A DNA stretch of 64,000 nucleotides, taken from the NCBI GenBank assembly GCA_021613535.1, contig CP075494.1, forward strand, positions 6,696,001-6,760,000, in the 5' to 3' direction. This stretch comes from Adineta vaga. Its lineage: Eukaryota > Animalia > Rotifera. The translations under genes were made by a program, and so were the position numbers. A model generated the notes under the pieces. It saw only the letters and a list, made by a program, of their open reading frames with translations. It was not told the origin of the DNA and did not search any database. Shown here piece after piece: positions 29,192 through 35,100 of this stretch (position 1 is the stretch's first letter; every line of letters begins with the position of its first letter).

Positions 29192-32100
29192 TTAATATCC
29201 TGAATAGCCAGGTGCACCACCGTATGGAGGATAACCACCACCAACACCACCAAAACCTGGTTGTGGAAAAGCTCCCATACCAGGTCCAGTAATCATTAAT
29301 GGTCCTTGTGCTAAACAAAATTTTGAAAAATATATAATCAATCAATCATTGATCAGATATACATACAATTAAAATCAATTGGTTTTTGTTCATTCGCTGT
29401 TTCATTTTCTGTACGAAGTTGATCAGATTGTTCAAGTTTATCAACCTATTCAATACCAGATACATTTGTAATACTTAACAAAAAAAGATCTTTATAGATT
29501 TGTTTTACTTTGGTAATATATTCTCTCATTATCTGAATCATATAAGGCATTGCAAAACTGATGATATCATGACGCCATGCAAGTTCAAGAATAACATCAG
29601 GCCGTAAGAGATCGTAACATTGAAATAAACATGCACCGAAACATTCATATAATTTTTCATCAAGAAACCAGGCAATTAAATCTTCAGCTAATTCGATTTG
29701 TCGAGATTCTGATGCATAGGTCATTGAATCCTAGAAAGAAAAAGAATGAACAAAAAAAGTTCCAAAAGAAAACCTAAGATTTACTTTATATAATCGATCT
29801 TTTTTACATAATTCAACAGCTTGTTTCCATCGATTATTTCCTTTATAAAGATAAGCAGCAATACGACGGAATTCAATTAATTCATGTTTTTCTAAACGTT
29901 GTGCTAATGATATATTGTCGAAATTATCGTAGGCATCAATCGAATTACGTAAACCTTGATAATCTTCTTCTTCAATTAATAAATTATTTAATGCTTCATT
30001 GATTGCTTTATTATTGATATTTTGTACTGAGCGTAGATATGGTTTGACTAATGGAAGTTGTTTGACTAAAAAAAGAAAAATCATTTATATCTGTTACAAT
30101 CCATGATAAGAATTCATTGAAATGAAACTATCGAACGTTGCAAAGAACAGACGAACTTTTCTTTTGCACTTATTCTAAACGACTGAAATTTACATACAAT
30201 TGTAAAAACCAGAGATACCAAAGTGCAGATTCGAACTTGACTTCTCTATCGTTTTAAACAATTCAACTAACCTTTAATAAAATAATTGACTGCACGAGTA
30301 TGATCAAGACGTGGTGATAAAATTAAAAGTAAATCATTCAATAACATCGGTTTAAATTCCAAATAAAAATCTATTGCTTTGTAATATAATTCAATATTGG
30401 CTACTTTACCAATGATATCTTTAAAATGATTTTCACGCCATGCTTCAGATGGATGTGACATCATTGTTAATATTGCATTATCGAATTCCTCATATTTATC
30501 ATAGAGAAATACAAGTTCGGACCAAAGATGTGCTTGTTCACATGCACGTAAAACTTTCGGTTTACGAACACGTGACCAAAATAATTCTAAATGTTCACGC
30601 ATTTTTTGTGGCTTATATTTCGAATAAAGAATAGCTAATTCAGTGAACATTCCAATATGTGCACGTTCATGACCAAGTGCTGCTTCAAGTAATTGAATAA
30701 CTTCTTCAAAATAACCGCGATTTTGATAGAAATTGATTAATTCTTCTAATTCTTCTGCTTGTACAACAATTTGAATACCACAAATTTGTGCCAAACGAAA
30801 TTCTTGTTTTTCAATACAAGCAAAGCAAATCTATTAAAAGATTAGAAATGAAGTTCAATTCATCAAAACTAACAGATTCATCAACTAAAACTTACTTCTT
30901 TCCATGTTTTTGTTGAATTTGCTTTACGTGCACTATCAACTGCACTTTGATAATCACCCAAATAACATAAAGTAACAGCTAATTTAGCATAGTTGGAAAT
31001 GTTATTATAGAGAATCTTAGCAGCTTCATACATTCCTTGTTCGAAACATCGATCTCCAACCTAAATCAAATTGATATGAAAGAATTCGGTTTTGTTTTTC
31101 ATAAAGAAATCATTTACGGCTTGAATTTGAGCATGATTTGGTGATGTAATAAATTCTTCGAGATCAACAAGACGATTTGTTTTTGCATAAGCAAATGCCA
31201 ATTCGGTTTCAACAAATGTTTCTCTTGCTTTCTTACGTGCCATTTGTAAATAACGAACTAAATCTTCCCAACTTTCTAGAAAAATATAGAACACAAAGAA
31301 TGAAAAACTAAATTCTTTCGATCGAACTTACGATTTTGTGTTGCAACATTAACAACTTCTAAATAAGATGTTGGATCATCTGCCTTGATAAATGAATCAA
31401 TCGATTCTTTAACAAGTCCTTGACGTATCTGAGCATTAGCCAGTATACTCCATACAGCAGGTTCATTACAACGTTCAGCAAATTCATAAGCACGATCAAG
31501 ATTTTTAATATGATCAATGAGGACTTGAATAGCTGATGTATTGACTTCGAATTTCTTATAAATTGAAAAAGCTTCTTCATACAATTGATTACTAATTGCA
31601 ATATTGGCAATATCTGGCGCATCATAATTCTCTAAACGATTAATATAATCCATAACACGAGTACGATCAGCTTTAATTGCAGTTAAAATAAGTAAATTTT
31701 GTAAATTTCTACAACAAAACTAATCAAATGAAAAGATCAATTCGTACAATTTTACTATACCGATGTTCACTGAATACGGAATTATCAATGACAATTTTTT
31801 CTAATAATTCAATTAAGTTATTTGGTAAATCAGCTGTCATAAAAGCTTTAACTGTAATTGATATTTCTTCGGGATCTTGTGTTTCGGCTAAAGCTGTTTG
31901 AATAACTTGATCAATTAATGGCCGACGATATTGATTATCTTCACGTAAAACATGTTCCCAAAGAGTAGGATCTTTTCGACGAACCAAATAACGTGCTTCG
32001 CTTTTGAATAAGGAATTTTCATTGCAAACCTATAATTTAATTTATATGAAAACAAATGAAGGATTAAATGTCTCAATGTGTTATATCAATTTCACTATTG

Positions 32101-35100
32101 ACGAATATTTTCCAAAAGGCAAAGACAAGCTTAGCATTCTTCGAGCAACGTCTTGGTCAGACAGTACGAATACAAAAAAGGGTTTGAATCATTTTTTTAA
32201 CTCATAAATTAAAGTCATCATTCCAAGATTCCGAAAACTGTCTAACATTCTCTTTGTATTTACTTACATTGACAAGTTCCATATCACATGAACCACGTTC
32301 ATAAGCTACACAAGCCAAGTGTGGATCTCGTTTTTCGCAATATTTTCCTACAACTTTACTATCGTAATGTGGATTATCGCGAAGAAATTTCTCGGGATTG
32401 CTATTTGAATCAATATAAATCTTTGCTAATGCATTATGAACACCTGGATCATTGCTACCATCATGAACACGAGTTTCCAACCATGGTAGAAGTAATTTTG
32501 TTCTAAATTACATTTCAATATAAAGAATTATTACGAAGAAAGAAATGAGTTTTCTTTTAAACAAACCGATTGCGTTTTTCAACTTCTTCAACAAGTTCAT
32601 CGACATTGAAATTTCCTCGTACAGAAAGAATCAATTGTTTGATACTATCTTCACTACAATCAACATCGAGTAAACCACCAACGACAACGGGTAAACGACC
32701 TGAATTAACCTAGAATAGATACATAAAGATAATGAATGAATAGAATTTTTTCGTTGTATTTTCATACTCGTTGAACATAGATTTCAATATTTTTCATTAA
32801 ATTATTGCGATATAAATAAAGAACAAGATCATGAACAAAATTGAATCGATCACAAACGATAATTAATGGTAATTGATCGGTTAATTTTGCTTCTTTTAAA
32901 AAGTTTTTAACACGTTCGGGATCGTAACAATTTGATTCTCGACAAATACGTTCGACTTCTTTAATTTGACCTGTTTTACATGCAGCTTGAATATATTTAA
33001 AATGAACGTCGGGTTCTTGACTAAAGTTAACAATTGAACCAAGAAAATAGAAGAGACCTAAAGACAAAAAAACATATCATTAATTGTTCGAATTCTCAGG
33101 ATCATTAAACTATTTTCTTATGAGATTTAATGAGCTGTTTATGTAATCCGTCTTCTATTGCCTGGGCATTCGTCGTATCACAACAAGGATATGATACGAG
33201 CGATACCAGGCAGGATCGAACTTGTTCAATATATAGTTTTATCAATTCAACTAAAATCTATTACTTTCTTCTACTTGTTTGAAGTACATTGAGTGAAATT
33301 TTTTACCTTCATAACTTTTGAATGATTCGAATAATTCAATAAGTTTCTGTGTTCCCAGTTGTTCATGATATTTCGTTGCAATTTGTACAACAACTTGTAA
33401 ATTTTGTCGAATATTTGCTTGAAGCATGGCTTTTAAACATTCTACACAATCATCAACTGATAATCGTCCAAAATAGTTGACCAACCACTAGAAAAATCAA
33501 ACAAATTATTTCGTTTAAGTTCGACAAAATTTTCAATACGTACATCTGCATTAAGTAAATGCGTATGTACGACAGCTCGTTTAATATCATACAAGTCCGT
33601 ATAATGTTCAAGAGCTCGTTGAAGTAAACCAGCTTTTTCACATAATTGTGCAATATGTGGTCGATCATAATGTGTAAACATATTATTACCCAAAATAGCA
33701 TCAGCAACCTAAGAGGTAAAACAAAGTTATTTTTCATTGATTATTATTCATATTATCATTGAAATTAATTTACTTGTGGTGCTTGCATTAAATTCATTTC
33801 TAATAAACGTGTTTGTAAATGTCCTTGATCTTCACGATTATTTTTCAATGCTTCCAATAAGAATGCTGTACATTGTTGGATAAGATTTTGTTCAAGAAAA
33901 ACATCAACAACTTGAGTTAAATCAGCCATTGGTTCTTCATCTTGAACAAGTAACTAGATAAAGAAAAAGAAATGAAATATGGTATTTTCAAAACTAAAAA
34001 CGAAGAAATTTACTTGAGCAAATTGAACACCTTGCTCGGGATTAATTCTCATAATATTTCGAAGTAAGTAAATATAATCAGGTTGATAATTGACCTTTTT
34101 GGCATAGAGAACGATCTTTTGATATTGACCTGTTTCAGCAAAGCATTGAATAACTTTCATTGGTACATTAGCACGTAAATAAACAGATAAAGCTAATGTT
34201 GGATCAACTGATTTAACAAGATCACCTAATTGTTCGCTACATTCAAGCTAAAAATAAAATATTTATAATTCTTATGAGACAAAAAAAAACAACAATTTCG
34301 TATAGATTTACTTTATCTTCTTTCAACCATTTTTCTAATAATTGTTTTTTTCCTTGCATGACAACTGGTTTACATAATTCAATTGATTCTTCTTTATTTA
34401 ATTTGCTTGATTCTAATAAAATACTAAAATATTGAAGCAAAGGTGATGGTTGATTGGGTTGTGATGGTACTGTTTGAAATTGTTGAATTGTTTGTTGAGT
34501 ACGAAGAATTCCCTATATATATATATATGTAAAATTAAATGTCAATGTGTGGTCTCTGGAGAATTCAACTCATTGAACACAATATTCTTGTAACAAAAGA
34601 CATGAAAGAGATTCTGATTATATTCAATCAAAATTTTACTCTACATGTAATAGTAGACAATACATTTACATTCTTATCAATTGAAGAAATGATACAGAAG
34701 ATGAAAGTAATGTATCTACTAGTATTACATGTAGAGTTAAATTGATACAATTATTAACCTTGTTTCTTACTATACAACTATCAATACTTTAATTATAAAT
34801 TTTCTAAAAATTTACCCGCGGGGCTGTAGCAGCAACTTTAGCAGCTTCGGCATAATTTCCACTTTGAAATAATTGTGCAAATCTTGCAACAAATAATTGA
34901 TCGGCACCGGGTAAATTGCATCGGGCTGACATCTTATAAGCAAGTTCAGGATTGGCTAATGTATTTTGAATATATGATACAATATTCTCTTCATCAACAC
35001 TAACTGACAGAACCTAAACGAAGAAAATATTTCAGTTACAATTGAATATAAACTCAAACATTGATTTGTTTTTTTTTCTCATTACTTGTCCTTTACGATT

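Follow-up and report, generated by a model that had tools for sequence, protein, structure and literature searches.

The UM2 promoters of Caenorhabditis elegans small nucleolar RNA (snoRNA) genes are said to have been the subject of work by Deng et al. in 2006. Expression depends on the A and B boxes of UM2, and these form part of the primary transcript, which starts 9 bp upstream of the motif (PMC2527325) and ends at T runs, and expression from UM2 is uncoupled from that of the host (Li et al. 2008, PMC2527325). In the same nematode 52 TFIIIC sites at snoRNAs have RNA polymerase III (Pol III) bound to them, such sites being enriched in introns (PMC6950938), and mutation of the boxes of the microRNA (miRNA) family mir-1829 abolishes its expression and leaves the host mRNA unaffected (PMC12487709). 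The yeast snR52, RPR1 and ZOD1 genes possess A/B leaders that do not adopt a transfer RNA (tRNA)-like fold (PMC2566860). For plants, the same source cites tRNA-Gly-snoR43, in which the tRNA promoter drives the downstream snoRNA and RNase Z releases the tRNA (Kruszka et al. 2003, cited in PMC2566860). A related arrangement is encountered in the bdelloid rotifer Adineta vaga, in a stretch of 64,000 nucleotides (positions 6,696,001 to 6,760,000 of contig CP075494.1, assembly GCA_021613535.1; referred to as the window), where two introns of a clathrin heavy chain gene each carry a leader composed of an A box and a B box in front of an H/ACA snoRNA. Comparison across the genome and with related rotifers shows that these leaders belong to a conserved and, as judged from substitution patterns, selected bipartite family that, in bdelloid rotifers, immediately precedes some 30 snoRNA genes of the C/D and H/ACA classes. 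The reading favoured here, with a rough probability of 0.6, is that the leader is a TFIIIC/Pol III promoter situated in a removable 5' leader.

The features of the two introns, in window coordinates and all on the minus strand, are as follows.

30066..30271, minus strand: host intron 1 of the clathrin heavy chain gene, 206 nt, with leader copy 1 and H/ACA snoRNA 1; GT..AG in X1, X2 and X17 contigs, PF00637 exons.
30259..30269, minus strand: copy 1 A box TAGTTGAATTG, across the 5' splice site GT/TAGT; identical in orthologues L100, L107 and L116.
30237..30258, minus strand: copy 1 A-B spacer, 22 nt, free in sequence and fixed in length (75% identity across four species, 22 nt in each).
30228..30236, minus strand: copy 1 B box GTTCGAATC; identical in all orthologues.
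30089..30227, minus strand: H/ACA snoRNA 1, 139 nt, with a conserved internal T5 run; consensus fold hairpin-hinge-hairpin-ACAGAT, without an Rfam match.
30068..30080, minus strand: T5 and T7 runs, 8 nt past snoRNA 1; T5+ occurs 7-14 nt past the snoRNA in all four species.
33058..33306, minus strand: clathrin host intron 2, which measures 249 nt and carries leader copy 2 and H/ACA snoRNA 2; spliced in X1, X2 and X17 contigs.
33243..33253, minus strand: copy 2 A box TAGTTGAATTG, 53 nt past the 5' splice site; identical in orthologue L089.
33213..33221, minus strand: copy 2 B box GTTCGATCC, spacer 21 nt; identical in L089.
33082..33212, minus strand: H/ACA snoRNA 2, 131 nt, with no internal T run of four or more; consensus fold with L089.
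33066..33072, minus strand: T7 run, 9 nt past snoRNA 2 (T9 in the orthologue), from the T-run table.
34770..34780, minus strand: A-box-like word TAGTTGTATAG, not a family member; no B box, 3.8 bits and E about 6 with the leader model described below.

Both leaders are thus present where the sequence-only reading had placed them. The pattern TAGTTGAATTG-N1-4-AAAAC finds these two matches in the window and none in 100 shuffles, and both leaders fit the A-box pattern TRGYNNARNNG(G) and the B-box pattern GGTTCGANNC(C). The host exons, searched one by one, encode clathrin heavy chain (PF00637, E 5e-35 and 5e-22). Because assembled RNA contigs from three independent studies (runs X1, X2 and X17) splice out 30066-30271 and 33058-33306 with GT..AG ends, the leaders are both intronic; the joint of the second intron, given as 33055>33305 'cut +2', corresponds to GT..AG at 33058-33306. 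Such contigs show splicing and cannot show RNA 5' ends, and a low-depth unspliced X17 contig over 30042-30256 is uninformative. Since the contigs place the first intron base at 30271, the copy 1 A box begins at intron base +3 (GT/TAGTTG) and overlaps its own 5' splice site, as had been proposed. The further A-box-like word that the sequence-only reading saw ahead of a third intronic RNA fared differently: at 3.8 bits, compared with 38 bits for copy 1 and 35.7 bits for copy 2, it was rejected as a third copy and is a chance-level word.

Each clathrin B box directly abuts TGC..., the first stem of an RNA with the layout hairpin-ANANNA-hairpin-ACA. This H/ACA layout is recovered for both downstream RNAs in single-sequence and consensus folds, with ACA placed 3 nt short of the 3' end in the tails ACAGAT and ACAATT, and is accompanied by compensatory double changes at two base pairs in copy 1 (four species), one in copy 2 (two species) and six in the group of the H/ACA family member L048 (six sequences), the counts for the clathrin copies being small. 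The zero spacing between leader and snoRNA therefore holds for both clathrin copies. The two snoRNA bodies are otherwise dissimilar, as claimed, with a local alignment score of 16 that equals that of shuffled sequences (15.9 ± 2.4); the idea that copies 1 and 2 are recent duplicates was rejected since their snoRNA bodies have no significant similarity. Searches of the window returned no match at Rfam gathering thresholds and, with ARAGORN, no tRNA.

The leader is not confined to the clathrin gene. In the genome of 100.8 Mb (6 contigs) the pattern TRGYNNAANNG-N17-25-GTTCGANNC has 41 matches compared with 5 for the reversed control, and a highly specific core pattern has 12 compared with 0. A sequence-only covariance model built from 12 leaders recovers 29 loci from the 150 that were scored among about 191,000 first-pass candidates, of which one (L080) was later dropped as spurious, leaving 28. 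As 11 of the 12 core-pattern matches were already listed, the near-consensus family probably comprises about 30-40 loci. The remaining core-pattern leader, missed by the model search, lies at G000:C6:8225103-8225154 (plus strand) and consists of the A box TAGTCAAATCG, 31 nt and GTTCGAATCT. Several candidates were set aside. The bare 11-mer TAGTTGAATTG is not diagnostic, with 187 matches compared with 50 in the control, mostly in unrelated coding or random sequence; L045, L028, L082 and L004 are chance matches in coding or unrelated sequence; and L080, considered as an antisense member, has a weak B box, and the sole snoRNA nearby (U36a-like) is leaderless and on the other strand.

The family consensus, with A box TAGTTGAATGG and B box GGTTCGAATC (written (G)GTTCGAATCTAY after the A box), departs less from the canonical tRNA boxes than either clathrin copy does. 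In the alignment of 12 sequences the A-box positions T, G, Y, A and G and the B-box GTTCGA..C are invariant, and these correspond to the tRNA promoter positions T8, G10, Y11, A14, G18 and G53-T-T-C-R-A58..C61; the same boxes occur in genuine tRNA genes of this genome. The spacing between A and B boxes is bimodal, with 20-22 nt in 16 of 28 members and 26-36 nt in 11. A snoRNA follows the leader at 23 loci or more, its ends being predicted from structure or box motifs. It is of the C/D class at L005, L037, L039, L049, L050, L067, L069, L070, L073, L077, L078, L079 and L081, and of the H/ACA class at both clathrin copies, L003, L048, L071, L072, L074, L075, L076 and L083. Among the leader-bearing RNAs Rfam identifies U14/SNORD14 (E 4e-8), and its matches to snoR38, Z266, SNORD59 and SNORD31 stay under the threshold. 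At 23 loci the boxes lie upstream of the predicted mature RNA, at a distance from the B box of 0-8 nt for H/ACA and 10-43 nt for C/D snoRNAs, a range of which the zero spacing of the clathrin copies is the lower extreme. The genome scan that had been suggested for the motif thus places snoRNAs downstream of it well beyond the two original sites.

Orthologues from other rotifers come from one metagenome scan with a short-spaced leader pattern (spacer 17-26 nt only), which returned 42 contigs. About 27 of these are AT-rich (27-36% GC) and carry orthologues of known units, including the clathrin exon-intron junctions. L100, L107 and L116 are orthologous to copy 1 and L089 to copy 2, and orthologues were also found for L048 (five distinct sequences), L039 (three), L037, L038, L069, L070 and L005; the leader model applied to 106 kb of the relatives' contigs revealed no units besides those selected by the pattern. 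Pooled over eight orthologous groups, identity is 0.96 in the A box and 1.00 in the B box, values which are inflated by ascertainment bias since the metagenome matches were selected for intact boxes; it is 0.70 in the A-B spacer, 0.70 in the 3' intron tail, 0.78 in the 5' part of the intron, 0.85 in the snoRNA and 0.855 in the exons. With an identity of 0.70 per site, however, survival of all 17 fixed positions would be expected in only about 0.2% of orthologues, and nine units were recovered from other species, several of them from 3-5 distinct lineages, which on these sequence comparisons is not compatible with neutral boxes.

This bears on the possibility that the leaders are functionless, being remnants either of an old fusion between tRNA and snoRNA or of a recent duplication, or a chance resemblance. 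Members share sequence beyond the minimal boxes, for example GGTYTAA past the A box and TCTAY past the B box, which suggests common descent and would suit a relic. Such a relic would not be expected to hold boxes whose conservation exceeds that of coding exons, with the intervening 20-22 nt changing in the manner of neutral intron, nor to be recovered in nine units against the expected survival, and chance would not account for pattern counts of 41 and 12 compared with 5 and 0 in the controls. An origin of this kind without present function is therefore regarded as extremely unlikely.

The distance between the boxes behaves differently from the sequence that fills it. Spacer length is constant within orthologous groups (for example 22 nt in 4/4, 22 in 6/6, 21 in 4/4 and 20 in 3/3) despite about 30% sequence divergence, and the only changes are from 31 to 22 nt (L069/L096) and from 30 to 20 nt (L070/L105), or about one helical turn. 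Jumps by one turn, of which there are only two, are suggestive of one factor that touches both boxes. By comparison, the A box lies 2 to 53 nt past the 5' splice site, at a distance that differs between orthologues. In L100 an insertion of 8 nt that resembles a local duplication, the sequence ahead of the A box reading GGTTAGTTAGC, parts the 5' splice site from the A box; the two overlap in the window, L107 and L116.

The sequence-only reading had offered a second route by which the leader might act, namely as a mini-tRNA composed of a D arm and a T arm that is cut by RNase P and/or RNase Z to free the 5' end of the snoRNA, as in plant tRNA-snoRNA dicistrons or mascRNA. The boxes do correspond to D-loop and T-loop sequences, the H/ACA snoRNAs begin 0-8 nt past the B box, and RNase Z cuts plant tRNA-snoRNA precursors according to work cited in PMC2566860. 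The fold itself is not found. Among 28 leaders the only T-stem pair that forms consistently is G53:C61 (96%), which is part of the B box; the other four T-stem positions pair in 18-54% of leaders, as do the slid controls, acceptor-like pairing is at chance, and D-stem pairing is 3.18 compared with 3.11 in controls (P = 0.3). Folding energies are those of shuffled sequences (mean z -0.2, none under -2), the spacer leaves no room for an anticodon arm, and the ARAGORN search of the window agrees. In addition, the gap of 10-43 nt ahead of the C/D snoRNAs means that a cut at the end of the leader would not produce their mature 5' end. Cleavage of a mini-tRNA is consequently considered very unlikely. 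Since the leaders have no RNA structure, the data argue for recognition of the boxes at the level of DNA. The conservation data show, within the groups compared, purifying selection on the boxes and their spacing at the sequence level and not through an RNA fold; a fixed distance, a free sequence and no RNA structure are what would be expected of a bipartite DNA-binding factor such as TFIIIC.

It is proposed that the A and B boxes are bound by TFIIIC, which would position TFIIIB and Pol III for initiation some 10-15 bp upstream of the A box, a start point that in copy 1 would fall within the upstream clathrin exon. Pol III would then read through the leader and the snoRNA and stop at a T5-T9 run a few bases past the snoRNA, and the leader would be trimmed back to the assembled small nucleolar ribonucleoprotein (snoRNP). 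The snoRNAs would then have an expression route that either bypasses or supplements their release by splicing of the host intron, as for UM2 and for yeast SNR52 and RPR1. Members that appear to have no host intron to supply the RNA (L038, L083, L067, L073 and L050) appear to support a Pol III promoter.

In several respects the T runs around the snoRNAs speak for this proposal. The T5-T8 run that closes a tRNA gene in this genome falls within about 10 nt, and in several of these genes it is exactly T5 (the trailers being taken from pattern matches). The 23 defined leader-snoRNA units contain 2 internal runs of T5 or longer compared with 7.1 ± 2.4 in dinucleotide shuffles (P = 0.02), and 11 of the 23 have such a run within 15 nt past the 3' end, where the T5+ density of 11 ordinary clathrin introns validated by RNA would predict about 15% (P = 2.6e-4). 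Every species in the L039, L037 and L005 groups has a T5-T6 run 6-9 nt past the snoRNA, with the 3' splice site 40-85 nt beyond it and the tail otherwise diverged. In copy 1 the T5 and T7 runs at 30068-30080 could represent a Pol III terminator, the pyrimidine tract of the 3' splice site, or both. Three leaderless intronic snoRNAs do not show these T-run features and one of them has an internal T6, three being too few to test.

Several observations weigh against a Pol III promoter, in addition to the ascertainment bias mentioned above. Runs of T4 are not depleted inside the units (20 compared with 24). All four species retain the internal T5 of copy 1, to which L116 has added another, and an internal T6 is present in L077; because tRNA genes here terminate at T5-T8, such internal T5/T6 runs count against Pol III. 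Seven of the 23 units have no run of T5 or longer within 120 nt. The box spacing of 20-22 bp is below that of any tRNA gene and below the 33 bp of UM2, TFIIIC spanning about 33 bp in UM2 and tRNA genes. No convincing member among the 28 is antisense to a gene, and nothing obliges a fully autonomous Pol III unit to be sense-intronic or to hug the 5' splice site.

The last of these points concerns the genomic context, which was derived from RNA contigs for the clathrin gene and from open frames and splice motifs for the others. At least 19 of the 28 members are sense-intronic, with the A box 2 to about 50 nt past the 5' splice site and overlapping it in copy 1 and L077, and L038, L083, L067, L073, L050 and L072 seem to be non-intronic. 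Sense orientation and one snoRNA per host intron are also what is seen for conventional intron-encoded snoRNAs, to which the promoter-like boxes are the exception. An alternative explanation is that the leader acts in the Pol II host transcript or gene without Pol III, either as a site bound by TFIIIC only, comparable to extra TFIIIC (ETC) sites, or as a single-stranded RNA motif bound by a protein. It would then promote snoRNP assembly or intron processing, with the snoRNA released from the spliced intron. The lack of antisense members, the tight position of most leaders against the 5' splice site, the tolerated internal T5/T6 of copy 1 and L077, the seven units without a nearby T5+ run and the efficient splicing of the host introns all fit this explanation, and in C. 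elegans about 500 TFIIIC sites contain the A and the B box and have no Pol III (PMC6950938). It would leave the seemingly non-intronic members (L038, L083 and others) without a host intron, and the T5+ runs that are conserved 6-9 nt past the snoRNA, far from the 3' splice site, without a function. The variation of 2-53 nt in the distance from 5' splice site to A box implies no fixed splicing geometry, and, as the clathrin gene's own leaderless snoRNAs demonstrate, no leader is needed for release from an intron. A/B boxes are not known to have a role in snoRNA processing, which also counts against a role confined to the host intron. On balance this explanation is judged unlikely.

Release from a Pol II intron and an own Pol III promoter are not mutually exclusive, and a dual route would stand between the host-intron explanation and the favoured one. 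It is conceivable, if not probable, that the leader is more than a Pol III promoter, being a TFIIIC-bound or RNA-level element in the Pol II host intron or the means by which the balance between two routes is regulated; the leader might, for example, delay or tag the host transcript and so let snoRNP assembly precede splicing. If the leader acts in the host intron, the absence of antisense members, the position at the 5' splice site and the internal T5/T6 runs are features and not exceptions. Among these readings the one of independent Pol III units, as the sequence-only reading had suggested, is best supported by the family, the identity of the boxes, their conservation and the T runs, and it falls short of proof.

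Other RNAs of the clathrin gene carry no leader. A SNORD41-like C/D snoRNA at 32152-32227 (minus strand) in the intron 32028-32265, with an internal T6, scores 34.2 bits (E 7e-4), which is under the Rfam gathering score; it shares its host gene with the two leader-bearing H/ACA snoRNAs and so provides a natural internal control. The 303-nt clathrin intron 34512-34814 (minus strand) contains a long and nearly perfect inverted repeat whose arms measure about 30 bp (34642-34733), followed by a possible second hairpin and ACA, again without a leader. The sole Rfam match of the repeat is a weak one to a plant miRNA (E 0.5), and the RNA may be either a hairpin RNA or an H/ACA RNA of unusual form. 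Two more leaderless intronic C/D snoRNAs occur near family loci, at L084:2208-2279 (minus strand) and L080:1137-1215 (plus strand); one is SNORD36-like with 34 bits, over the gathering score, and the other is U36a-like.

Elsewhere in the genome, L038 (G000:C4:5933992-5937031, minus strand) has a strong leader of 38.8 bits, followed at about 45-310 nt past the leader by a conserved RNA of about 265 nt. This RNA has a C/D-like terminal motif, CTGATGA ... TCTGA, flanked by ATTGCA/TGCAAT, is conserved in the orthologues L095, L098 and L099, appears to be non-intronic and, in three species, ends in T5-T7. Rfam offers no match for it, and U3 was rejected as its identity since the two U3 genes of the genome lie at C6:5309886 and C3:10550945 with about 131 bits each. 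A repeated tRNA-like unit is present at L018, L019, L026, L027, L034-L036, L043 and L054, which ARAGORN classifies as tRNA-Thr or tRNA-Asn with an AT-rich acceptor stem, and (CCCACA)n arrays lie about 150 nt downstream of it.

If the favoured reading is correct, rotifers (Spiralia) join nematodes, flies, yeast and plants as organisms with tRNA-type snoRNA promoters, which would strengthen the view that such promoters are old and widespread and no nematode oddity. A fair share of the 'intronic' snoRNAs in a compact animal genome would not be passive passengers of their hosts, and a Pol III promoter would be written into, and at times overlap, a Pol II 5' splice site. With boxes 20-22 bp apart and length jumps of one turn the family provides a natural experiment on promoter geometry, and the leader motif may serve as a cheap marker for rotifer snoRNA genes and as a candidate compact Pol III promoter for guide RNAs in bdelloids. 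The sequence-only reading had held the arrangement to be undescribed in this lineage. In a full-text literature search no paper turned up that connects snoRNAs and Pol III in rotifers in such a way, which agrees with the claim, whereas the arrangement as such is well known in nematodes and yeast: what is new is the lineage, the spacing of 20-22 bp and the overlap with the splice site, and what is known is the A/B leader itself.

UM2 is among the closest known parallels to the rotifer leaders. In both, an A and a B box lie upstream of the mature snoRNA in a leader that is, or in the rotifer would be, short-lived, tens of loci are involved of which many are intronic, and oligo-T follows the RNA, in the rotifer in part of the units. 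The UM2 boxes are 33 bp apart, whereas those of the rotifer are mostly 20-22 bp and in a minority 26-36 bp apart; the one is found in Nematoda and the other in Rotifera (Spiralia), where the leader hugs and sometimes overlaps the 5' splice site. Activity, transcription start and termination have been measured for UM2 and are predicted for the rotifer leaders. The Saccharomyces cerevisiae SNR52, RPR1 and ZOD1 genes also have A/B boxes in a 5' leader, which in yeast Pol III transcribes and which is later removed, and their leaders, as in the rotifer, have no tRNA fold. Unlike the rotifer leaders they are single genes which form no family and are not intronic, and RPR1 and ZOD1 are not snoRNAs. 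The mir-1829 family offers a parallel for intronic sense Pol III units in protein-coding genes with A/B boxes upstream of and T runs after the RNA (PMC12487709), although its product is an miRNA precursor and its boxes lie about 80 and 40 bp upstream of the RNA. With the plant dicistronic tRNA-snoRNA genes the rotifer loci share an upstream tRNA-type promoter that drives, or in the rotifer would drive, a snoRNA; the plant element is a complete functional tRNA, whereas the rotifer leader has no tRNA fold. Finally, ETC sites are A/B-box DNA bound by TFIIIC and are often intronic in C. elegans (PMC6950938), a binding that is presumed for the rotifer; they are unlinked to a downstream small RNA gene, whereas nearly every rotifer leader precedes a snoRNA.

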